Below are positions 1-3,000 of a stretch of DNA of 64,000 nucleotides, piece after piece; position 1 is the stretch's first letter, and each line of letters begins with the position of its first letter. Source of the DNA: Vitrella brassicaformis CCMP3155 (taxonomy: Eukaryota > Protista > Chromerida); contig CDMY01000198.1 in the NCBI GenBank assembly GCA_001179505.1, positions 1-64,000 on the forward strand, in the 5' to 3' direction. Below the pieces are notes generated by a model. That model searched no databases and was not told the DNA's origin. It saw only the letters and a program-made list of their open reading frames with translations. The position numbers and the translations under genes were made by a program.

Positions 1-3000
1 GCCTGCCTTGTAGTCCACATCACACAGGGGCTTCAGCAAGCTGGTCAGCAGCTTGAGGTAGGAGGCAACGAGGTTCTGGTCCTGGCTGGGCGACACCTCC
101 GGCAGACTGCTCCTGTGGTACTCGAGCAGCGGCTCCAGTAGCCATTTCGACACCGACAAGATCTGACTCTTCTCGCTTTCGGTCAACGTCTCGGGGCAGT
201 GAGCCTGCAGACAGCGACAACAGACAAAGAGAGTTTCGGCTTGTCTTTGTCTCCTGCTGTGCTGTATACCTTCATCCAGCTATCGATGAGGTGCTTGTAG
301 CCCATTTCATGAGGCTCGAAGTATACCTGCGGACATCCATGTGTTCAGAGCCCGCAGCTATGTGTTCAGATGGAATTCTTGTGCTTACCATTCCGCACCG
401 GCTGACGGTCGCCGGTGACCCCAGGGCGAGATCCATTGGCTCGAAGATCATGTTCATGTTGGGAGCCATCGCGATGATCTCACCTGTATGACCACAAGCG
501 CAGAGAAAGGACGGGCGTGTCTCGCGTGCATCTGCTGCTGCCTACCGCTCGTGAGACACAGCTTTTTTTTGTCGTCGAGCACGGTGTTCATGTTCTCAAT
601 CCACACAGCATCCACCGGGCCGTCGAACACAAGCCACTTGCGATCCTGAAAGGATCAACACACGAAAGAGACGTGAATTGCGCGCAAGACACTTGTGAGG
701 TTGCCTTTTACCTCGCTCTGGTATCGTGCGAAGTTTCTGTAGATAGAGTACGGCGAGGATGCCGTCGCTCCACTCGTGAGAGACCTCATCGAAGCACCCG
801 TAGAGCTGCCCCACCTTGATGGACTTGGGATTCAGCGTTGTCATGTGCACTTTGTGCTCGTCCATCAAGCCCTTCTCCGCGAGGTCCGTGAGGGCCCCAG
901 CCAGCATCCGCAGCGAGGACGTCTTGCCGCCGGAGGGCAGCCCGACAACCATGAGGCCGTGTCTGACGATGATCATCTCGTACAGCTGGGGGAGGGGCTG
1001 CAGATTCGCTCGAGATTTTTGTTCAGCGCATCAAGGAGAGCCTGCGAAATACCAAGACGCCCCAAAAGCAGAGCTTTGCAGCATCATGATACGTGTGCGT
1101 GCATACCTTGTAGTCGGGCTGAGGCAGCACGACCCCCTGGAAGAGATCGGAGGTGATGCCCTGGAAGAGGGGCAGATCGTGGGACAAGAACTTGGCCAGG
1201 TTGACGTCGTTGATAGCCCGCAGCATCAGGATGCTCTCGTCCTCGTTGGGGAACTTGCGCTTCAGATTGCCCGCGGCAGTCAGGACGGACTTGACGGCCC
1301 TCATCCCATAGTCGTAGTGATCCTGGGACGACAGCTGCTGGAGGAACTTGGGCACATTGACGTCTCGCAATGCACGCAGCAGCAGCTTCTCCTCGTCCAT
1401 GTCTGAATCAACACACACAAAGAGACATACATACAAGAAAATCATTCGGTCTCAGGCCGTATGCTATGCGTGTCGTTGTGTGTCTCTCCATCTGTCTGTC
1501 TGTCTGTCTGTGTGACCTTGGTCAGCTCGCTTGAGGAGGCCGGCAGCATTGATGACCGATCGCATAGCCCTCATACCGTGGTAATCGTAGTGATCCTGTC
1601 GACAACCAGCCAGCCATGGGAGGAGACCGACAGAGAGACTGTTGGCATCGATGTGCATATCCACCTGTGCGGAGAGCTGTTCGGACGACAGTTGGAATGT
1701 GGCGACCATCTTTCTGGCCAGATCGCGGGCCTGATCGAATCCGAATGAGTAGAGCATGATCTCTCCGATGAGGGCATAGTCGGGAACCATCATGGCCATC
1801 GGTCTGAAGAGCGCCTTGAGGTTGTCGGGCAGCTCAGCGCGGCGGGTGTTGCCCCGGTTCATCGTGATGAACACGTTGAAAGTCGGGTACATCCGGATCA
1901 CTGAACCCTCAAAATCTACCTCCTGCACACACACACATCCTGTCTGTCACGTGTGCAATCGATTCCTGGCCGTGAACAACTGCGTGCCTTGGAGTCGTTG
2001 AATCCGGCGAGCTCCCCCTTTGCGCCGAAGAGGATGAGCAGCTGCTGTGCAATGACGGAGAGCACCTTGATGCGATTGAACTCATCCAAGCAGCACCATG
2101 CGCCCGAGGAGGCCAGGCCCTTGAAGAACTTGCCAACCATGATGTAGTCCATCATCTCAGAACAGTTGAACACCACACACTGCTTCGCCAGCGCCTTGGC
2201 CAGATCCTTCGTTGTCTCCGTCTTGTCCGTACCAGCCGGGCCGGCCGGGGCGCCACCTGCACACACAGCCACACACAAAGGGAGGAGACACGGGGTGCAA
2301 TTGGTGTTATGTGAGAGTGGGTTGTGCTACACATGGACTGACCAAGGTTGAGCTGCTGTGCACCGAGCAGCGTCATGTAGCACATGTCGGCGTGTGGTGT
2401 GATGACAAGTCGCATGCTGTTGCCGAGGTACTCGTATCCGTAAGGGAAGTTGGTCTGCACGCACTGGCACCAGCAGTCGTCGTTCTGCCAGTAGTAGCGC
2501 AGCTGGGCAATCCACTCAAAGGCAGAGATGTTGTCGATCTTCTCCTTGACCAAATTCTCCACCACGTCCTTGGCATGCACGTCGATGACGATCAGCGCAC
2601 CCACACTGATCGAGTTCATCTTGTTGAGGCCCGTGCGGACAAGTGCCACCATATCGAGGAGCTGACGGTTGAGGCCGTCCCAGTACTGCTTGACCGTCCC
2701 GTTCTGAATGGCCTCCTCCACGTCGCTCGTCCAGTGCACCTGGCTCCCATTCAGCACACACTGACCCGGATGCACCAACACCCACTCGGCTCTGCATCAG
2801 CCCACAGCAAAGCCGCAAGGCACATGGTTATCTTCCCACTCAAATAATGCGTTTATCTGGGCATCGATCAATCACCTTGGCTTTGTAGGGTAGTCGAGTA
2901 TAGATTTGTACAGGACGTCTCTGACGGCCTTCTTCATCTGTATCTCAATCTCGGTCATCCAGGTCTCGACATTCTTGTCCTTGGTGTAGATGGTCTCCAC

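Follow-up and report, generated by a model that had tools for sequence, protein, structure and literature searches.

A probable non-processed patchwork pseudogene built from two inner-arm dynein heavy chain genes and a third locus in Vitrella brassicaformis

The locus from Vitrella brassicaformis CCMP3155 that is described here resembles non-processed pseudogenes and mosaic segmental duplications, in that its pieces were copied from genomic DNA in part, keep their introns and have a functional parent elsewhere. Frameshifts, the loss of catalytic residues and the one-sided accumulation of changes are further features in common, as are patches from several loci, which adjoin each other by blunt or microhomology joins. 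Fusions of the Lepore type, produced by unequal crossing-over, are also comparable, as their 5' and 3' parts come from different paralogs in the same orientation and keep the local frame. Moreover, the capture of genes by Helitrons or Pack-MULEs gives chimeric arrays of intron-containing fragments from multiple genes, a composition likewise seen here. Regarding the protein family, the exons of the locus align over the linker, AAA1 and AAA2 with the inner-arm chains DNAH1 and DNAH7/3/12 (structures 8J07, 9FQR and 8GLV).

The window, meaning the whole stretch of DNA analysed, is the initial 64 kb (64,000 nucleotides) of scaffold C198 in the assembly of this organism (72,700,666 bp in 1064 scaffolds). 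Window positions are preceded below by w, and C plus a number names a scaffold of the same assembly, which was produced with Velvet (k=75), followed by scaffolding, gap-filling and a check with REAPR, whose purpose in the pipeline is the breaking of misjoins (PMC4501334). The dynein-like sequence lies on the minus strand, as do all features given by window position unless otherwise stated, and reaches past the start of the C198 scaffold. Similarity searches were run per exon, and paralogs were assigned by DNA identity together with single-exon scores. Codons were compared over the parental exons, located by numeric coordinates (1156 codons against C385 and 300 against C688), other dynein paralogs of the same organism served as outgroups for the polarity of changes, and dN/dS was estimated pairwise by the simple Nei-Gojobori method. 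The sources and boundaries of the pieces, the disabling changes and their polarity were observed directly in these comparisons; the explanation that best accounts for them, and which we regard as likely, is a non-processed patchwork pseudogene, predicted to be non-functional.

The DNAH1-type piece (w1341-6028) is a copy of C385:115110-119776 with 93.4% identity, introns included, and comprises the neck, the linker (DHC_N2) and the first two thirds of AAA1, its last codon being the L of ...PKFL. A DNA search of the organism's own genome matched w1346-3400 to C385:117706-119771 at 93% identity, local comparison, which took in the introns, widened the matching interval to w1338-6028 (93.4%), and the remaining dynein paralogs matched at 86% or less. 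The affected exons of the C385 parent give collinear alignments to DHC_N2 (positions 7-402) and AAA_6, and the entire DNAH1-type region, with its canonical motifs, is present on C385. Just downstream of the junction point, C385:120000-125999 is single-copy in the assembly. The initial annotation had assigned the upstream side of the junction to the DNAH1 type, and this assignment is confirmed by the tail exon of the parent, which aligns with DNAH1 residues 697-883 (E 1e-19) and has no DNAH7/3/12 chain among its matches; the C385-like exons of the AAA1 region, taken alone, separate the DNAH1 and DNAH7/3/12 types weakly.

The adjoining piece (w1-1339) is a copy of C688:147375-148732 with 92% identity and comprises AAA2 and the end of AAA1. 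When compared with solved structures, the C688-like exon scored 124-112 bits with DNAH7, DNAH3 and DNAH12 and 88 bits with DNAH1, so the DNAH3/7/12 affinity proposed for the downstream side holds as well (124 bits against 88). As judged from these similarities, the sides of the window flanking ~w1340 derive from two different dynein paralogs. Intact parents, which the initial annotation had suggested looking for elsewhere in the genome, are represented by intact-looking ones on C385 and on C688 with C914, and the stretch just upstream of the junction point on the latter parent (C688:145000-147373) is single-copy in the assembly.

Across the junction of the two pieces, an AAA1 segment is present in two copies, as can be seen in the translation of the minus strand. 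A segment of about 50 amino acids, occurring twice with differing sequence and introns, had been reported from the window alone, and its length is now set at ~51 codons, the copies abutting in frame at w1341|1339. Copy 1 (w1341-1679), identified by translation and by comparison with C385, is of the DNAH1 type and has two introns: its initial QLSAQ codons (w1679-1665) are separated by a 69-nt intron (w1664-1596) from an exon that reaches from w1595 to ~w1519, and past the second intron a further exon (w1402-1341) closes with ...PKFL. At w1582, copy 1 bears a 3-nt insertion coding for an additional H. Copy 2 (w1185-1337), identified by translation and by comparison with C688, is of the DNAH7/3/12 type and intronless like its C688 parent, its exon extending to a GT donor after w1107. 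The whole of w1402-1107 is a single open frame, which keeps the join in frame locally. The copies share ~60% protein identity, and each of them matches a separate gene elsewhere in the same genome at 92-97% identity, which excludes a chance resemblance. In addition, their intron structure agrees with that of their sources, as this segment carries these two introns in the C385 gene and is intronless in the C688 gene. A tandem duplication within one paralog is ruled out, because the copies trace to different genes (C385 and C688). Neither are they mutually exclusive tandem exons, since copy 1 is without a following donor and copy 2 without a preceding intron, and since they originate from different genes. 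At the base level, the junction falls where it had been placed, at about 1340: the L codon at w1343-1341 ends the DNAH1-type piece, w1341 being C385-like, and the DNAH7-type piece takes over at w1339, which is C688-like, while w1340 itself is unlike both parents, with 0-2 nt of possible microhomology flanking it.

Upstream of the C385-like piece, the order is a C592 patch, a 72-nt filler, a 116-bp C385 piece and unrelated single-copy DNA. The C592 patch (w6026-6302, 277 bp) is a copy of C592:194326-194596 with 92% identity and represents a third source locus, non-dynein in nature. It is followed by the filler (w6303-6374), for which the junction alignment gave no clear source, and then by a stretch (w6375-6490) copied from the DNAH1-type parent (C385:114520-114631, 88% identity), which forms the outer edge of the patchwork within the window; past ~w6490 the DNA is single-copy and non-dynein. 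Pfam gave no match for the open frames flanking the patchwork in the window, nor for the source frames on C592, C388 and C500. Similarity to dynein begins at approximately DNAH1 residue 640-700, so that some 640-700 residues are missing from the start of the tail in this copy. The patchwork itself is single-copy in the assembly. A whole homeolog or a copy from a second haplotype was rejected, as the similarity ends at w6028 for C385, barring the 116-bp patch, and at 149425 for C688, and no further copies of the flanks were found in the assembly. Likewise, the assembly contains no leftover halves of either fragment, the adjoining stretches of C688, C385 and C914, including the 3' half at C914:5000-9999, being all single-copy.

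The copy in the window has accumulated four frameshifting indels (w5094, w3859, w1009 and w747), all within parent exons whose coding status is backed by DNAH1 and Pfam alignments. In the comparison with C385, a 1-nt deletion at w5094 is a frameshift, since it is located within the stretch aligning with human DNAH1 residues 697-883, and a second 1-nt deletion shifts the frame of a DHC_N2 exon at w3859. In the comparison with C688, w985-1012 contains a 4-nt deletion (w1009), which shifts the frame and leads to a stop ~12 codons on, and a 21-nt deletion (w989), which takes out conserved residues ahead of the QLYE motif; a 4-nt insertion (w747, within w744-750) close to the exon end carries a further frameshift into the following exon. 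In-frame indels relative to C385 are found at w4263 (+12), w2067 (-6) and w1582 (+3). Read in the parental frame, in-frame stops come solely from the frameshifts. A rescue of the frame by splicing was considered and rejected, because the 4-nt insertion and the two 1-nt deletions have no equivalent of the in-frame AG that lies downstream of the 4-nt deletion.

Catalytic motifs are damaged as well. The Walker A of AAA1 (w2225-2227) has changed from GKT to DKT, at a position that is G in the C385 parent and in 8/8 paralog outgroups; the Walker B region (w2067-2090) shows a change of F to L and the 6-nt in-frame deletion already mentioned; and NPGYAGR (w1838-1858) is degraded to NRGNTRR, the window copy being derived at four sites when compared with 8-9 outgroups. 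Regarding polarity, the window copy is derived at all 15 of the decidable sites in the C385-like part, among them the Walker A change, the four NPGYAGR sites and two PLTD sites, and at 5/5 in the C688-like part. The pairwise dS values of 0.082 and 0.125 are close to the intron p-distances (0.071 and 0.095). The pairwise dN/dS values were 0.32, 0.15 and 0.20, lower than the ~0.5 that copies evolving neutrally from their origin would be expected to show, and once the non-synonymous changes are assigned to the copy, its branch has a dN/dS of roughly 0.3-0.6. Partial past constraint on the copies, or a bias of the Nei-Gojobori method, may be the cause of these low ratios.

As for the origin of the patchwork, the retained introns exclude a retrocopy, and together with breakpoints that fall inside introns or exons, never at exon borders, they place the events at the DNA level. 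The joins have 0-3 nt of microhomology overall, that between the C592 and C385 pieces having 2-3 nt, and for this reason homologous ectopic recombination is not indicated. Unequal homologous crossing-over also disagrees with the register of the join, which is 51 codons out with 0-2 nt of microhomology, and with the state of the parents, which are not consumed: the C385 region is whole and both halves of the DNAH7-type gene exist. The proposal of ectopic recombination between two paralogs, out of register by about 50 codons, is retained in its two paralogs and in its offset of ~51 codons but not in a homologous exchange. Instead, multi-kilobase genomic pieces with their introns would have been copied from at least three places, namely the DNAH1-type inner-arm gene on C385, the non-dynein locus on C592 and the DNAH7/3/12-type inner-arm gene on C688, and joined end to end in a single orientation, presumably by end-joining or template-switching repair rather than by homologous exchange. 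The 51-codon stretch of AAA1 is doubled because the DNAH1-type piece ends, in dynein coordinates, 51 codons beyond the start of the DNAH7-type piece. The resulting tail-less copy would later have decayed through the frameshifts, the dead P-loop and the damage to the Walker B and sensor motifs.

The DNAH7-type parent requires a closer description, as both C198 and C914 come to their end, at the start of the former and at the end of the latter, within a stretch of 128 bp. In this stretch, C688:148632-148759 is identical to w101-1 together with C914:10764-10738, the share of the window being w1-101 (no strand assigned) and the mutual overlap of the two scaffolds 47 bp. C914 enters the stretch by exactly 74 nt (k-1), and the stretch exceeds the Velvet k of 75. 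The repeat has two entries and two exits, and the published path leads from the left part of C688 (C688-left) to its right part (C688-right). Past the repeat, C688 is decayed, with 14 residues lost including the FSA motif, the F of FGPP changed to S and the P of DDLNMP lost; its likeness to dynein ends at 149425, and beyond that point there are copies of C388, C576, C746, C189 and C500 along with inverted local duplicates. C914, on the other hand, is conserved at the sites decayed in C688-right, and spans AAA3 through Dynein_C in order (AAA_7 end, AAA_lid_1, AAA_8, stalk, AAA_9, D6, AAA_lid_11 and Dynein_C). C688-left carries DHC_N2 and AAA_6 and has a weak match, in the structure database, to a Chlamydomonas inner-arm tail; DHC_N1 was not found in it by Pfam. 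Of the element at C914:1013-2107, the genome contains just two further copies, both on C688-left. No disabling change was seen in C688-left and C914, whereas the window piece and C688-right have them. As decay follows the path from the window to C688-right and conservation follows the path from C688-left to C914, C688 is probably mis-threaded. On balance, we favour a working DNAH7-type gene that would consist of C688-left and C914, the pseudogene extending from w6490-1 into C688:148760 onward. This threading error is not assured, since exact repeats of 115-136 bp between the C385 gene and the window copy were threaded correctly by the same assembler.

The latter observation also speaks for the unlikely alternative in which the scaffolds are correct as published: C914 would be the true continuation of the window, and a working DNAH7-type gene would have been split by reciprocal exchange, in recent times, with the patchwork pseudogene at the 128-bp stretch. 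It agrees with the 47 identical bases by which the end of C914 and the start of the window overlap, and with the use of REAPR to break misjoins (PMC4501334). Nevertheless, the same 47 bases are equally identical in C688, so that the overlap cannot discriminate between the pairings, and the relatives of the C914 element are solely on C688-left. This alternative would also need an additional and very recent event, and would leave the organism with no intact DNAH7-type gene although C688-left and C914 are both without disabling change. An assembly artefact at w1340, with the DNAH1-type and DNAH7-type fragments non-adjacent in the genome, would be a concern in a short-read draft that was scaffolded and gap-filled (PMC4501334), with the join 1.3 kb from the scaffold end. 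There are no N runs nearby, a graph with k=75 would meet no long word common to both parents at the join by which it could be misled, and the leftover halves expected from a misjoin are missing in the assembly. In addition, the variants on both flanks of w1340 are those of the diverged copies and not of the parents, a pattern that chimeric reads formed between the two parent genes would not give. The assembly chimera that the initial annotation had offered as one option is therefore decidedly improbable, and the w1340 junction is probably real in the genome.

If the junction is real, its local frame, the dN/dS far under 1 and the indels of the C688-like piece (-4, -21 and +4), which add to a multiple of three, could be read in favour of a working or recently working chimeric heavy chain formed by out-of-register ectopic recombination; the donor at w1664 could in principle even splice to the AG before w1322, skipping copy 1. 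Such a protein would have no tail, its similarity starting at ~DNAH1 residue 640-700, and would have to tolerate two 1-nt deletions within linker exons, the stop ~12 codons past the 4-nt deletion, the DKT Walker A and the damaged Walker B and NPGYAGR, with a polarity of 15:0. As both parents are intact elsewhere and the join is without homology, this reading is extremely improbable, and the heavy chain of the organism has not been fused into a chimera, as had been claimed; what is present appears to be an extra copy, tail-less and frameshifted, whose P-loop is dead. Capture and deposition of the fragments by a mobile element of the Helitron or Pack-MULE type is improbable too. It would account for intron-containing fragments from several unrelated loci in one orientation and for additional scrambled dynein fragments in the genome (C910), but the flanking open frames contain no transposase, helicase or other mobile-element domain in Pfam, the patchwork is single-copy, and transposable elements total merely ~1.5 Mb of the Vitrella genome (PMC4501334). 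Random capture does not predict, moreover, that the pieces of the two paralogs break near the same protein region. The patchwork pseudogene, presumably joined by end-joining or template switching, is the reading kept here.

Pieces of the C385 gene are present a third time on C910, as an older copy in permuted order and with 71-90% identity; in the three-way alignment, unique changes are fewest in C385 (10), followed by the window (19) and C910 (91). The locus in the window, the permuted copy on C910 and the patchwork of C688-right may be products of a recurrent process in Vitrella that copies pieces of dispersed genes, multi-kilobase in size and with introns, and pastes them into patchworks, dynein heavy chains being notably frequent among the sources, a generalization that we consider doubtful. 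Some of its products may have been temporarily under selection, which would fit the low dN/dS.

The main worth of these results is a correction, as the DNAH7-type inner-arm dynein of this organism is probably intact and split over C688 and C914 by a mis-threaded repeat of 128 bp. Counts and models of chromerid dyneins taken from the assembly would mistake the locus in the window for an odd chimeric motor, and the C688 locus as assembled would pass for a dynein that is truncated and continues into unrelated DNA by fusion. The locus would also be a clean case of the birth of a pseudogene by end-joined partial duplications in a genome poor in transposable elements and, together with C910, hints at repeated fragmentation and copying of the Vitrella dynein genes.

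When compared with the described systems, the locus departs from the usual non-processed pseudogene in two features: two of its patches stem from paralogs of the same family and overlap by 51 codons, mimicking an in-frame internal duplication, and its dN/dS is below that expected of a copy neutral from birth. The differences with fusions of the Lepore type are the join, which is 51 codons out of register and lacks homology, the parents, which persist in intact form on other scaffolds and are not replaced, and the presence of an insert from a third locus together with a missing 5' end. Unlike the products of Helitron or Pack-MULE capture, the locus is single-copy and its fragments are biased towards paralogs, and no termini, hairpins or mobile-element proteins were found at it. 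Compared to the inner-arm chains DNAH1 and DNAH7/3/12, the copy in the window, being tail-less and frameshifted and having a DKT P-loop, has the appearance of a relic, presumably without motor function. Judged by its sequence, the locus is of an ordinary kind and behaves as a duplicated pseudogene of the non-processed class would, set among mosaic segmental duplications.

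Pieces of the DNAH1-type gene of scaffold C385, the parent of window positions 1341-6028, are found for a third time on another scaffold of the assembly, C910 (stretch L034, 807-2503), with 71-90% identity to the C385 gene. Their order is permuted, running in parent coordinates from 119678-120057 to 113969-114506 and then to 117316-118395. This C910 copy predates the copy in the window.

Regarding scaffold C688, which carries the DNAH7/3/12-type parent of window positions 1-1339, a single open frame continues past its truncated dynein fragment into low-complexity sequence (C688:149425-154000; L027 4426-9001). 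The DNA there is a patchwork, composed of copies of scaffolds C388, C576, C746 and C189 (76-93%), a copy of C500:44587-48128 (76-87%) and inverted copies of C688:167466-167995 (95%) and C688:163382-163732 (81%). The first bases past the dynein fragment, C688:149425-149534, are 93% identical to the scaffold end C189:1-110, C189 being another scaffold that ends in this repeat family. The window itself contains two scaffold gaps, N runs of exactly 300 each, at 26452-26751 and 62053-62352.

One repeat family, of about 1.1 kb, has three members, C914:1013-2107 (L032, on the scaffold with the 3' half of a DNAH7-type gene), C688:129685-130634 and C688:134227-135296, with 81-82% identity and one of them inverted; the rest of the genome holds no further members. 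The one frame tested in the C914 copy, the open frame C914:965-1768, has no Pfam match. Another open frame (C688:140443-141285; L013 5444-6286) lies on the upstream side of the linker exons of the C688 dynein, approximately 3 kb away, and limits the space left for the dynein tail; its match to the CCDC81 HU domain is weak (E 1.5e-5) and falls slightly below the Pfam cut-off.

The parent dynein genes also possess two introns with apparent GC donors instead of GT, at C385:119129 and C688:148464, whose window counterparts lie near 1985 and 270, respectively. At the C688:148464 site, the donor is GC in the conserved copy, compared to GT in the decayed window copy. Of the introns in the first copy of the duplicated AAA1 segment, the one at window 1596-1664 is 69 nt long, a multiple of three, and stop-free in both window and parent, so that its retention would leave the frame unbroken.
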